A stretch of DNA of 64,000 bases from Macrostomum hystrix (taxonomy: Eukaryota; Animalia; Platyhelminthes). The notes beneath the pieces are model-generated. The model was not told the DNA's origin and searched no databases. It saw only the letters and a list, made by a program, of their open reading frames with translations. Where the stretch lies: the NCBI GenBank assembly GCA_950097015.1, contig CATNEN010000010.1, positions 1,302,001 to 1,366,000 on the forward strand. The letters run 5' to 3'. This document shows, piece by piece, positions 1,781 to 7,700 of the stretch. The stretch's first letter is position 1. Each line of letters begins with the position of its first letter. The position numbers and the translations under genes are program-made.

Positions 1781-4700
1781 CTATCGGGCGCCAGGGCATC
1801 ATAATTATCAGGTGATCGGTTCACAAAAACGTTAAAATAATATTACTGTTACGAACCTTGAGAATCATTTCAATAGTAAAGACCAGCGTGAAGGCGTAGT
1901 CAAAGTAGCCCAGGTAGATGTTTTTGAGGGTGACATTCTTGATATCGACCGGGTCCTCGGCTGCCAGTGCTATGCTGCTGGCGCAGATGATTATCATGAT
2001 GAACAGGTCGAAGTAACGCAGGTTTACCACGAAGTGACAGAATCGGCGAATTCTGTAATTTTAATGGCAGCAAACAATGCGAATCGGTACAAAATGTCAC
2101 CGAAGCTACTAAGCCCTGTAGTAGTATTAGGCGCGCATCTCACGGGTTGGTTGGCCCCAAGAAGAACATGGAGCTGTAGGGCAGGATGGGTTTGCCGACG
2201 CCGATCAGCATGTCGCCGCCCTCCTCCTGTTGACCAGACTCTTCGGACTCTGCAATCAAAGTTGGGATGGACAGGGACTCGTGAGCCTTAATGTGAGCCG
2301 AATGCTAAAAATTATCCGATCAAGCGATAAGTAGCCCAGCCGATAAGAGCCAGGGCGGAGCGCTTACTCTGTTTCATGATGCGACGCTCCTCCGCCAGAC
2401 CATTCAGCCGCCTGGGCTCCGGCGTCAGCTTGTCCACCTCGCCTGGTTCCTTGCAGCTGGTTGGGTTTTAGTTGGGATGGTGGACTTCGTATGAGCTCTG
2501 CTACTACTACCACTTCTGCCCGTAGCACTACCACTCGCACGCCAAAAAGAACTGTGTGCTCACTAATCGAATCGCTGCTGCTCGAGGGCGCCAACCTGCC
2601 CGGGTGTCGGTGGCACCACATTCAGCATTGGAGCGGCTGCTGTTGAGGCTCCTGGTTCGGATTCGTCCGGCTTGGCCTCGCCGGCTTCAGCCTCGGTGCG
2701 CAGCATTTCTTCGCGCTGGGTCAAAAAAGCATTTTCATTTTAGCATGGATTTGCCTGGCTCTAGGGCGGCCAAAATGCAGTGTTACCAGGAGAATTAAGG
2801 AGAGAGCTGCTAACCTCTTTTTCTTCATTCTCTCTCTGCTCGTCCAGGGCCGTGAGCTCCTGCGCATTCGCCAGGTTGTCCACAGCGATGGCCAGAAACA
2901 CGTTCAACAGCGTGTCTGGCGTTTGTTTCGAGTTACCCACAGGCGGTTAAGGAAAATGAAATAGACAAAAATGCATAATGAAAAGCAAGGCCATACGGCT
3001 GCTGCTGCTGATTAATTATCAAAGCGGCAAAGAACAAATATGCTTTCGCAGAGGCAGTTTAGAAGAACTGGTTAAATTCGATATATGAATCATTTGCACT
3101 TTGCACACAAACTGTTCTCTGTACAGTTCCACTGCTCCACACCTTTCTTTCTGCACCTGCTTTTTCTGCTCTCCTGCCTTCCGGGTGCCAATAACAACTT
3201 TTCAGCCTATCCGCTCAGCTTTAGTCTCTGGCTTGATTGATGAGTTTCTGCTGCTGCAACTGCTGCATTAACCAATGTAGCGTAGCCAACAACGCCCGTT
3301 ACTCTTTTCTAATCCGTCCCCGACTCATTTCCTCGGCTCTCCACCTAGACTTCCACCCCGGGTTGAATAATATAAATAGTTCCATTTGACACTTGCTGTT
3401 GGACACAGCAATGGCAGAGTAGGGGCCAATCTAAACTTCTTCCGAGTTTCAAGGCCTCAGTTATTGAAAATCTTGAAGTTGCCAATGTCATTGTGTTACT
3501 ATTTTTAACATAAATGGTAAAATAGTATGGTGAATAAATGCTGTGATAAAATATGAAATAGGCACTGGTAGCAGATGCACTGACAAGCGTAATGCAGTAG
3601 TGAAAGGCAAGCCGTCTTAAAGTTAGGTGCTAGTTCGTACCTAATAATAAAATCTCAAGTTATTTTTTCTTATCTCTAGTCCTTTCGACTAATTAGAACT
3701 ATGAATAATTTTATAATTTGGTTAGCCTGCGTAAGTCATCAAAGAGATTAAGTATAAGCATGCAGATAAGCAGAATGGTTGTGTAAGCATAGTTTCCAAA
3801 CTCAATCGGTGCATCGGATCCTAACAAGATGTCTCAGTGCTTCTGCTTGTGAGTGAATAGGAAAGTAGAAATGAAAATAAACCGAGTAAGTTTATCTGAG
3901 AAATAAAGAAAACCTTCAACTCAAGAAGAACGTAAACTTCAGCCGTTAGGAGCCAACAAAAAGCTAGAGAGAATAAATTTCAGAGATAGCAAGCTGGAGA
4001 AATCGCTAAATTGTTCGTCAGCCACCGAGAGAGTAAAATGCAAGTGAAAGAGCAGTAAATGTCCAAATAAGATAATAAAATAAACGATAATAGATAGATA
4101 AACGGCGGCGTGAACTCGAGGATACAGTTTCCGAACAGCACTAGGAGAATGAAGTAGGTGGCATAGGCCATGCCCTGGCCTACACCGCCTTGCGATCTGA
4201 TACCATAGTACATGATGAGGTTCCAGTCCTCGCCGGTCAGGATCTGCGAGCGCGTTATGTTTAGTTGCGGAAAATTTTTACAATAAACTACTCGTACGCT
4301 CAATGCTTGATCAGGAATTTATCGATTCGGCCGAGTCCTAGCTGATAGGCTGGCTTTAATTCTAGAATTTGTCTATAGACCAGCTGGAAATGGGTGATAC
4401 AATGAGCTGCTCACTAGAGAATTTCAGCTCAAAATACCCCAGGGATAACAATGTACTCGTACTGTAGGATTAATGGTACTGCAAGTCTTCTCTTGGACAC
4501 GTCAATTTCCCCTCCTCGACTAGAAAAATGTGCTTCTTTAACTGTGCGGTAATCAGAATTGACAGTAATTCACTGAATGGCAGAGGGTGGTTAGCTGCAC
4601 ACAGACCGCACAGGCTTCTCTGCAAGAATTCTCAGACGTAGTGGCGTACAAGTACACTGTGCTCATATGGCATGCTCGTGATAGCAGCGAGTGCACCGAG

Positions 4701-7700
4701 TTCGGAGCCTCAGCTGAGCATGCGGGACACATCTTATCAGGAATCGGCGTGGGTATACGGCTGTTAGCCTTAGTTGCTAAGCGGCAATCTGCATAAATTA
4801 GCCGTACAGGGGGTCGCGCACTTGCACAAGCGCGGTCTAGAATCAGAAACGAAGAATGCATTCACAGGCGCATAGTTATAATTCCTTAGGCTGGGAAGTT
4901 TCTGTAAAAGAGGGTTATGATGAGATCAGCGGGTTGGATCCCCTGTTTAGCCCACCCCTGCGGCAGGCAAAGGATACAATTGCCGAACAGCAGCAGCACC
5001 ACAAAGTAGGCCGCCGCCCACATGCCAGAGGAGCTGCCAGTCCGCTGCGAGCGAATGCCAGCGTACATCACGCTGTTCCAGTCCTCGCTTGTCAGCACCT
5101 GCTCAGACGATGGAAACGCAGAGTGGTCTGGTCTGGTTTAGAGTGGTCTGGTCTGGTTTAGAGTGGTCTGGTCTGGTTTAGAGTGGTCTGGTCTGGTTTA
5201 GAGTGGTCTGGTCTGGTTTAGAGTGGTCTGGTCTGGTTTTGTGTTTTCTGGTCTGGTCTGGTCTGGTCTGGTCTGGTCTGGTCTGGTCTGGTCTGGTCTG
5301 GTCTGGTCTGGTCTGGTCTGGTCTGGTCTGGTCTGGTCTGGTCTGGTCTGGTCTGGTCTGGTCTGGTCTGGTCTGGTCTGGTCTGGTCTAGTCTGGTCTG
5401 GTCTGGTCTGGTCTGGTCTGGTCTGGTCTGGTCTGGTCTGGTCTGTTCTGGTCTGGTCTGGTCTGGTCTGGTCTGGTCTGGTCTGGTCTGGTCTGGTCTG
5501 GTCTGGTCTGGTCTGGTCTGGTCTGGTCTGGTCTGGTCTGGTCTGGTCTGGTCTGGTCTGGTCTGGTCTGGTCTGGTCTGGTCTGGTCTGGTCTGGTCTG
5601 GTCTGGTCTGGTCTGGTCTGGTCTGGTCTGGTCTGGTCTGGTCTGGTCTGGTCTGGTCTGGTCTGGTCTGGTCTGGTCTGGTCTGGTCTGGTCTGGTCTG
5701 GTCTGTTCTGTTCTGGTCTGGTCTGGTCTGGTCTGGTCTGTTCTGTTCTGGTCTGGTCTGGTCTGGTCTGGTCTGGTCTGGTCTGGTCTGGTCTGGTCTG
5801 GTCTGGTCTGGTCTGGTCTGGTCTGGTCTGGTCTGGTCTGGTCTGGTCTGGTCTGGTCTGGTCTGGTCTGGTCTGGTCTGGTCTGGTCTGGTCTGGTCTG
5901 GTATGGTCTGGTCTGGTCTGGTCTGGTATGGTCTGGTCTGGTCTGGTCTGCTCTGCTCTGCCTGATCTGGACATTGAACAAAGTTCATTGTGGCAGGCTT
6001 TGATTAAAGGCTTACGTCTCATAACTAACTGCGTGATTTCGTGCTTTACTTCTGTCAAATTCGATTGCTTACTAATAGAGTGCATGCAATGAGCTCTCCG
6101 GTTGCTGCTCTCAGTTTATAGACATCAAATACCACTCTCAAGTGGTTTGATTGTTTTCTCTCGCCGGCCTCAGAAAACCCGATGAGCATGCGATGAGAAT
6201 GGATTATTATGCTTTAATTATTGATAAGCTCCACGAAATTGGCTCACCTGAAACACCGTTAGCAGGCCTTTGACGAACGTGTCGAAATTCTGAGCCGGTC
6301 GGCCTTCCGGAAAGTTGAACCTGCGGGGACGCCAGAAGCTTGGTGTGTTTGGAAGATTTTAGCGATCGATGGCGGCGCTGGCCACACTTATGTCCGTTTG
6401 AAAGCCTCATATTTTATTCACACTGTTTGAGCACACGAAAATCCATCGCCTTTTCGAAGCTTCGAACCCAATTCAAGGCCTTGTAACGAAAATTCATGTG
6501 ATTCCTAACTTATGTCGCCTGATTTCACTAAATTTATTGAATTCAGATGCGATTCGGATCTAGGAAAAGTTGATTTGAGAATGCTATGATAATAATATCA
6601 TTATTTGCAGTATGTACGAGCGTAGTTTGCACTGGCACATCATTTGGTGACAGTAAGACCCGCAACCAGCGAGAGGCTATTCTGTCTATTCCGCTGTATC
6701 TTGAATACACACGCACACATTACCTGTGATGGCACGCACTCACACATCTGCCCTGACTTTCTCATTGTGTCAGGCAGTAGTGCCAAGGGGTTTTGCCCTC
6801 AAGGGCCAAATTGAGGGATTGTAGGATAAGCCCTCAAGCCTGTGCCAAAATTATGTAGCGTATTCGGTACTGGAAACAAACTCGTTAATCGCTTTGCCAC
6901 TCACACCCTTCAGTCTGGGAGAGGCAGAAAAAAATTACAGTGAAAGGTACTCACTCTCCACCAAAGAGCTGCATGCCTAGCAGGGCAAATATCAATATGA
7001 ACAAGAACAGCAGGAACAGCAGCGAGATGATGGAGCGCATTGAGTTGAGCAGGGAGATCACCAGATTGCGCAACGATGACCAATACCTGGAAGTTATTTT
7101 TCGTAGTCTAAATTAGCGCCTGTCATTTGCGAGCTATTGATTGCCAATTTGCCATCGCGCTGTCAATTTAGAGGAGGGTTGCTAGGGCGTCACTGATCTC
7201 GCGATGCAGGGTGGGACGCTTCAAAATAAAATCTTTGCGGTTTCCGGGTGACTTCACGCCAAACTCTTAGGTGAGCAGCGACTACAGACAGTCCTCGATG
7301 CTGCGCTATAGGAACTGGTCAGCATGCACTTATTCATAGAGAGCAGTCAGTAACCACGCAAGCATGCTAGGCTGGCTGATTCAAATAACTCAAATATTAC
7401 TCATACTGCATGCAACAGAATGAGCTGGTCCGAAATATTAGGCTCACTATTTCTTTCACTTTCTTGTTAACAAGGCAATAAAAAATGCATTAAAATTGTC
7501 CTGTCCATCTTGCTGAGTTTTGCTAAAATCACTAGACAGAGAAGTGCACTGTTCAATGCATTTTAACCTAACCCAAGGACTACTAAAGTAGAAGGACGCG
7601 ATTAAGTGGAAAAATTTGTGCCGTTGAAGGTCGATTTTCAAGAAATTTTCCTTTGATTGAATTCCAATAAGGAGACAGTGTCAGCTTTATAAAAAACTGC

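Follow-up and report, generated by a model that had tools for sequence, protein, structure and literature searches.

How might a calcium-channel gene that carries two neighbouring exons for the same part of its pore place only one of them in each mature transcript? The question is raised by a stretch of 64,000 nucleotides (nt) from the flatworm Macrostomum hystrix (GenBank assembly GCA_950097015.1, contig CATNEN010000010.1, positions 1,302,001 to 1,366,000), which we refer to as the window and number from its first letter. Most of the length of a Cav2-type Ca-channel alpha1 gene lies on the minus strand of this window, with its first coding exon at about 20322 and domain III near 1650; the remainder of the gene runs past the window start. 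An initial annotation had described two tandem homologous exons (a and b) for the selectivity filter and the sixth segment of domain II (IIS6), and had proposed that the two cannot be joined because their splice signals belong to different spliceosomes, the major (U2-type) and the minor (U12-type), as in the JNK kinase genes. On direct reading of the DNA, the coordinates, phases and sequences of both exons proved exact to the base. We consider it probable that a JNK-type U2/U12 mechanism makes the exons mutually exclusive, a reading that finds support in the anatomy of the locus, in RNA and in the deeply conserved U12 signals. The elements concerned are these:

6320-6248 (-): constitutive upstream exon, domain II S5-P loop, ending ...GTGTTTCAG/GTGAGC (CAG/GTGAGC)
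6247-6242 (-): U2-type donor GTGAGC of the upstream exon, a good U2 site, read directly
before 5098 (-): U2-type acceptor of exon a, ...tctgagcag
5098-4978 (-): alternative exon a, 121 nt, phase 0 to 1, 40 residues plus 1 base (VLTSEDWN...LLLFGN)
4977-4969 (-): U12-type GT donor of exon a, GTATCCTTT
4977-4244 (-): hybrid intron between exons a and b, predicted to be unspliceable as a unit
before 4243 (-): U2-type acceptor of exon b, ...cgctcgcag
4243-4126 (-): alternative exon b, 118 nt, phase 0 to 1, 39 residues plus 1 base (ILTGEDWN...LVLFGN)
4125-4117 (-): U12-type GT donor of exon b, GTATCCTCG, with the core GTATCCT intact and positions +8 and +9 off consensus
2954-2946 (-): U12 branch-site consensus TTCCTTAAC, common to both alternative introns, 30 nt before the AG
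2915-2815 (-): constitutive downstream exon, which completes a Tyr codon and codes for the end of IIS6 and the start of the II-III linker

Exon a codes for the domain II filter TSEDW, the P2 helix, a loop one residue longer than that of exon b (RSQGGVGQG) and S6 as far as FGN; exon b codes for the canonical TGEDW filter and S6. When the upstream exon is joined through either one to the downstream exon, the result is an open Cav2 reading frame, and inclusion of both exons (239 nt) or skipping of both shifts the frame into stop codons. The assignment to Cav2 follows from the translation, which has the xEDW of domain II (the filter Glu, then Asp) and the Cav2-type S6/linker motif; Cav1 homologues instead carry ICGNYILLNVF. 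The flanking exons are 67-92% identical to a Taenia solium gene whose name in the source is P/Q-type alpha-1A.

Splice signals and RNA junctions at exons a and b

The upstream exon does carry the U2 donor that had been placed at 6247, and both alternative exons end in the minor-spliceosome donors ascribed to them, GTATCCTTT for a and GTATCCTCG for b, with the U12 core GTATCCT in each. Read by eye, GTATCC after ATT or ACT fits the U1 consensus at only 3 of 9 positions. We then scored motifs resembling the U12 branch site TCCTTRAY in the 50 nt before each acceptor, where the best match has 3 mismatches for exon a and 2 for exon b (TCCGCAAC). Matches this good or better are found in the majority of random 50-nt windows from the local introns, those with a best match of 2 mismatches alone making up 36%. 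Because these best matches are at background level, neither alternative acceptor has a U12 branch site, and we rejected TCCGCAAC as a relic of one for the same reason. Motif scoring thus agrees with the absence of a U12 branch site from both alternative acceptors and with the presence of TTCCTTAAC only before the common downstream exon, where it is followed by 30 nt to the AG that hold no polypyrimidine tract.

The introns flanking exon a cannot be aligned with those flanking exon b, except for GTATCCT at the donors and CAG at the acceptors. Across both strands of the 64-kb window, RTATCCTY occurs 9 times (6.5 expected); two of these occurrences lie exactly at the ends of exons a and b, and a third is the donor of an AT-AC intron in the same gene, described below. 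The match in splice signals goes beyond chance, since GTATCCT has been kept while synonymous sites between the exons are near saturation, the introns are unalignable and RTATCCTY is scarce. A further candidate, a third GTATCCTT on the gene strand (11654-11647), lies in the intron between the I-II linker and IIS1 exons; it adjoins no recognisable exon, is probably a chance occurrence and was rejected.

RNA from the locus is available as transcript contigs from two small public runs of one study, X1 and X2. All four junctions predicted for one-at-a-time use of the exons (6248>5098, 6248>4243, 4978>2915 and 4126>2915) are present in these contigs, and every RNA joint has GT..AG on the gene strand. 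In X1, one contig of 939 nt and depth 23 leads out of the upstream exon, through exon b, over the 4126>2915 joint and on through four more exon junctions; its loose end at 4246 matches ...ACGTTCGTCAAAGGCCTGCTAACGGTGTTT when reverse-complemented. The corresponding contig of X2 is shorter (180 nt, depth 6.8) and has exon a in place of b, attached to the upstream exon by a loose end at 5101 and to the downstream exon by the 4978>2915 joint. The common downstream exons are found in X2 in a contig of depth 22 that ends one base past 2915, as is expected from a branching assembly graph. Junctions with the upstream exon were read from the loose ends of contigs (last 27-30 bases), an 837-bp (CAGAC)n array lying outside the mapped stretch. 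We found no 4978>4243 joint, that is, a joined to b, among the contigs of X1 and X2; exons a and b occur in separate contigs with the same neighbours, so the exclusive use that had been proposed is borne out in these contigs. No branch for exon a is present in X1, and the depth of exon a in X2 is about 30% of that of the common exons, a difference between the runs that hints at regulated or variable exon use.

Contigs of low depth (about 3-9; X1 and X2) cover parts of the U12 intron between exon b and the downstream exon, at 2926-3737 (-) of the window, and no contig of either run covers the a-b intron at 4434-4897. The coverage between exon b and the downstream exon may reflect slow removal of a minor intron or DNA carry-over.

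One repeat stands next to exon a:

5124-5960 (-): (CAGAC)n microsatellite, 837 bp, about 167 units, period 5, 93% matches, in the upstream U2 intron

This array fills most of the U2 intron before exon a and stops 25 nt short of acceptor a. It is CA-rich, and every unit resembles a weak branch site; as a matter of speculation, it is a candidate regulator of exon a use. The same gene also holds a second homologous alternative exon pair, in domain II S3-S4, at 10014-9902 (113 nt) and 9119-9013 (107 nt), both on the minus strand. The donor is a GC donor (AG/GCAAGT) in the first exon of this pair and GTACTT in the second, and neither is a U12 donor.

Conservation of the minor intron and constraint on exon a

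The gene contains a second minor intron, which serves as an internal control for the signals described above:

20080-19350 (-): AT-AC U12 intron at segment S1 of domain I (D1S1), 731 nt, starting with ATATCCTTTT, with TTCCTTAAC at 19389-19381 and ending in ...GACAC

The branch site of this intron lies 31 nt from its 3' end, a spacing like that of the IIS6 intron, and the exons on either side, when joined, translate as continuous channel sequence. Nearly all Cav and Nav genes share the D1S1 AT-AC intron at this position (PMC6259924). Within the intron there is also a minisatellite of about 500 nt, with units like CTCATTCTCCCTCTG.

To follow the IIS6 intron in other animals, we performed phmmer with exon a against 1.8 billion representative proteins, in which the matches were mostly short open reading frames (ORFs) on genomic contigs that read from the exon into the intron. 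Among the exon-end segments recovered, some 115 of them genomic read-through ORFs, 101 from many animals have CIL after the exon end GN; GN-CIL corresponds to T/GT ATC CTN, the U12 core. This set includes exons typical of vertebrate Cav2.1, Cav2.2 and Cav2.3 and of Cav1, read-throughs that would point to a second vertebrate minor intron at the IIS6 position. Another 45 segments continue with YTLLNV and represent spliced RNA or genes without the intron. A minority of the read-throughs (P0073, P0076, P0091, P0100, P0127, P0148 and P0154) continue as GN-CK or GN-CE, from GTAAG and GTGAG, which suggests that the IIS6 minor intron may have turned U2-type in several lineages, a second Cav2 paralogue of Taenia solium among them.

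We examined the intron in DNA from three other animals. The donor reads AATT/GTATCCTTTT in Paragonimus westermani, with CCTTAAC 24 nt before the AG; AACT/GTATCCTTCT in Taenia solium, with TCCTTGAC 30 nt before the AG; and AACT/GTATCCTTTC in a third animal (L003), with TCCTTGAC 11 nt before the AG. Because the spacing is 30 nt in Taenia, 24 nt in Paragonimus and 31 nt in the AT-AC intron of the M. hystrix gene, the long distance from branch site to AG appears to be a flatworm trait of a genuine U12 intron and not the mark of an unused motif. By its sequence in all these animals, the intron after IIS6 is an ancient, deeply conserved U12-type intron of animal Cav2 and Cav1 genes. Schistosomes possess U11, U12, U4atac and U6atac (PMC2770079) and have verified minor introns (PMC10639083). 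In rat cardiomyocytes, minor introns 2 and 13 of Cacna1c are retained on knock-down of U6atac (PMC8767276); intron 13 may lie at the position of the IIS6 intron.

Exons a and b are identical at 24 of 40 residues and at 62% of nucleotides, with a ratio of nonsynonymous to synonymous divergence (dN/dS) of 0.30 and a synonymous divergence (dS) of about 1.3, near saturation. On these values, they are old duplicates and exon a is under constraint. We aligned 139 unique homologous segments and took as near-invariant the 19 positions with conservation of 90% or more; of these, 17 are retained in exon a and 18 in exon b. The two departures of exon a are the Gly before the filter Glu, so that TGEDW becomes TSEDW, and one Gly in the loop. 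At the filter position, Gly is present in 138 of the 139 homologues and Ser in one (L004). This one is a Cav2-like gene on a metagenome scaffold from an intron-poor animal (L004:6675-6930), with TSEDW in its sole copy of the exon; since that single-copy exon reads TSEDW, Ser is tolerated at the filter position. At the same intron position, L004 has a 61-nt U2-type intron, GTAAGT...TAG, an example of conversion from U12 to U2.

Exon a keeps the filter Glu, the Asp that follows it, the Trp and the FGN end, and differs from exon b in the loop and in upper S6 as well as at the filter Gly. The isoforms would thus swap the outer pore of domain II and not its charged ring. That the channel exchanges its pore loop (TSEDW for TGEDW) and S6, as the initial annotation put it, holds by translation and by the presence of both isoforms in RNA, with the refinement that the swapped portion of S6 is its upper part.

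Exon b is 65-67.5% identical to the orthologous exons of Paragonimus and Taenia. In one read-through ORF from an AT-rich genome, P0002 (UniParc UPI00060F11D9, 138 residues), the domain II pore/S6 exon is present twice in tandem, the copies lying some 38 codons apart, with CIL (GTATCCT) after each copy and the upstream copy more divergent; the cluster of P0002 is one UniParc entry, and its layout is known from the protein alone. Because P0002 has two CIL-ended copies, the same layout probably exists in at least one other species. A predicted protein, P0001 (727 residues), contains four partial head-to-tail repeats of this exon sequence; it looks more like an assembly artefact than an exon array.

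Proposed mechanism and competing explanations

In the mechanism we propose, a tandem duplication would have copied the exon before the ancient IIS6 U12 intron, along with the U2-type acceptor and the U12-type donor at its ends. The signals would then follow in this order: a U2 donor; a U2 acceptor, exon a and a U12 donor; a U2 acceptor, exon b and a U12 donor; and finally a U12 branch site with its acceptor. The major spliceosome would pair 6247 with 5099 or 4244, and the minor spliceosome would pair 4977 or 4125 with 2916. Both the a-b intron (U12 5' end, U2 3' end) and the intron that skips both exons (U2 5' end, U12 3' end) would be of mixed class and neither would be removable, so that exactly one pore exon would enter each mature messenger RNA (mRNA). 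Any leakage would shift the frame, given lengths of 121 and 118 nt, and lead to a stop codon, which would act as a second, independent safeguard; because double inclusion shifts the frame, U2/U12 incompatibility would not be the sole one. The layout does not account for the choice between a and b. Simultaneous commitment of both exons would leave the hybrid intron in place and make the RNA a dead end, so that some coordination would be expected, for example via exon definition spanning U2 acceptor and U12 donor.

Several points weigh against this mechanism. The contigs drop rare variants, and a low-level a+b or skipped product could be missed; X2 shows no contig for exon b, perhaps because of filtering, which makes the ratio of a to b in that run a guess. 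We scanned the Taenia and Paragonimus loci for a second copy of the exon and found none, the exon being single copy in both. A homologous-protein search with the exon a ORF gave no match within its length range, and no Macrostomum relative was obtained; in the representative-protein search, the nearest relatives of exon a were vertebrate Cav2.3-type exons (76% identity), with none closer. We thus found no exon a orthologue in another Macrostomum or in any other identified species. Finally, dependence on the minor spliceosome is something we infer from the splice signals, and as to what decides the choice of exon and how the isoforms differ in function, we can likewise only infer.

A frameshift alone would also yield apparent exclusivity, and exclusivity might accordingly be the work mainly of reading frame and mRNA surveillance, with the U12 donors merely inherited and doing no extra work. 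The exon lengths of 121 and 118 nt fit this explanation, as do the stop codons reached both by a+b inclusion and by skipping. However, with a donor that fits the U1 consensus at only 3 of 9 positions and with no U12 branch site, the hybrid intron should rarely be spliced out to give a+b in the first place; moreover, the two safeguards do not exclude each other and occur here together. We therefore regard an explanation by frame alone as unlikely. Slightly less likely again, in our judgement, is that exon a is a decaying duplicate included through splicing noise, with a working channel made only from the b isoform. Such decay would be in keeping with the change of a filter Gly kept by 138 of 139 unique homologues, with the presence of exon a in one of two runs and at lower depth, and with the lack of an orthologue among our searches. 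Yet exon a has an undamaged frame and two undamaged splice sites and retains 17 of 19 near-invariant residues, with dN/dS at 0.30, in spite of a dS near saturation; its depth in X2 is some 30% of that of the common exons, and the single-copy Cav2 exon of L004 has TSEDW too.

The U12 branch site itself leaves room for a different objection. A U12 branch site usually lies 10-20 nt from the 3' splice site; TTCCTTAAC is a perfect branch motif but stands 30 nt from the AG, and a U2-like GGGTAAC stands 16 nt from the AG. The major spliceosome might then remove the GTATCCT introns by way of the nearer GGGTAAC, which would do away with the incompatibility and leave the choice to some other means. We think this very unlikely: a perfect TTCCTTAAC at a like spacing is found in the AT-AC intron, which the U2 spliceosome cannot splice, and TCCTTGAC or CCTTAAC is kept in the Taenia and Paragonimus orthologues, whose intron sequence otherwise differs. 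GTATCCT is in addition a very poor U1 site, and lineages that have converted the intron show GTAAG or GTGAG, as seen in the CK and CE read-throughs. Competing RNA pairings between a docking site and selectors, as in insect Dscam, are the least probable means of picking the exon and are hardly to be expected here. There is a 13-nt pair, 92% complementary, that flanks exon b (4340-4352 and 3203-3215), but we estimate that 2.2 kb of sequence would hold about one pair of this quality by chance; the remaining pairs are CAG-type low-complexity matches, and no pair has cross-species support. We rejected the inverted repeats as selectors because they are at chance level.

Known systems and meaning for Cav genes

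Exclusivity through U2/U12 incompatibility is a textbook mechanism. In JNK2, exons 6a and 6b are exclusive because the intron between them is unspliceable, its 5' site being of U12 type and its 3' end of U2 type (PMC1874599). The U2-acceptor/U12-donor layout had been likened to that of JNK exons 6a/6b, and the order of signals is indeed equal (PMC1874599). In MAPK8, MAPK9 and MAPK10, 6a and 6b are, as here, tandem duplicates of like length and phase with an identical signal order (PMC1874599; PMC5740500 appendix S18). The M. hystrix pair differs from JNK in belonging to an ion channel and not to a kinase, in coming from another phylum, in having its branch site 30 nt from the AG and in that the role of U12 is here predicted from sequence. 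In the JNK2 hybrid intron, a long polypyrimidine tract sets the default exon, whereas the hybrid intron here is without a long tract. A genome-wide human census gives five U2/U12 clusters in its text and names MAPK8, MAPK9, MAPK10, MAPK14, CEP170 and CRTC1 in its appendix; a channel gene is absent from it (PMC5740500).

Minor introns in Cav genes are well known and, in the literature searched, are treated as constitutive. The conserved U12 introns of Cav and Nav genes have their counterparts here, with GTATCCT after IIS6, as in most of the animal Cav2 and Cav1 genes sampled, and with the D1S1 AT-AC intron in this same gene (PMC6259924; PMC8767276). In the DNA of the other species that we examined, single constitutive exons flank these introns, whereas here the exon is duplicated and the intron would become an exclusivity device.

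A further likeness is to exons 15a/15b of NALCN and 12a/12b of Cav3 in invertebrates, Lymnaea and others, which are likewise exclusive and swap part of the domain II pore, according to the portions of the reports consulted (PMC3557258, PMC4436565, PMC10120453). As described in those portions, the exchange affects a charged residue (E/K) or cysteines of the turret, a shift in Na/Ca selectivity has been measured, and no U12 involvement is reported. The Cav2 pair described here instead keeps the filter Glu and Asp, and differs in the change from G to S, in the loop and in upper S6. As the initial annotation had supposed, no Cav exon pair of such a kind was found in the literature searched. Exclusion by U2/U12 incompatibility was thus already known, and what is new, within that literature, is a member in the Cav family.

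RNA interference works in Macrostomum lignano, which makes the mechanism directly testable. The locus offers an independent case of such exclusivity in another phylum and another gene family, resting on a minor intron that is among the most conserved known, and suggests that old minor introns can become isoform switches via simple tandem duplication of an exon. It also serves as a natural experiment in altering the outer pore of domain II in a presynaptic-type Ca channel, with a change, among others, at a Gly kept by 138 of 139 homologues. A wider reading, which we put forward tentatively and regard as doubtful, is that the IIS6 U12 intron may be an exclusivity device ready for use, recruited on more than one occasion (here and in the source of P0002) to make Cav2 channels with a swapped outer pore, and that the TSEDW isoform may have altered permeation, block or gating, as in the Cav3 and NALCN pairs. 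If this were true, reuse of the device would give one concrete selective reason for channel genes to retain their minor introns.

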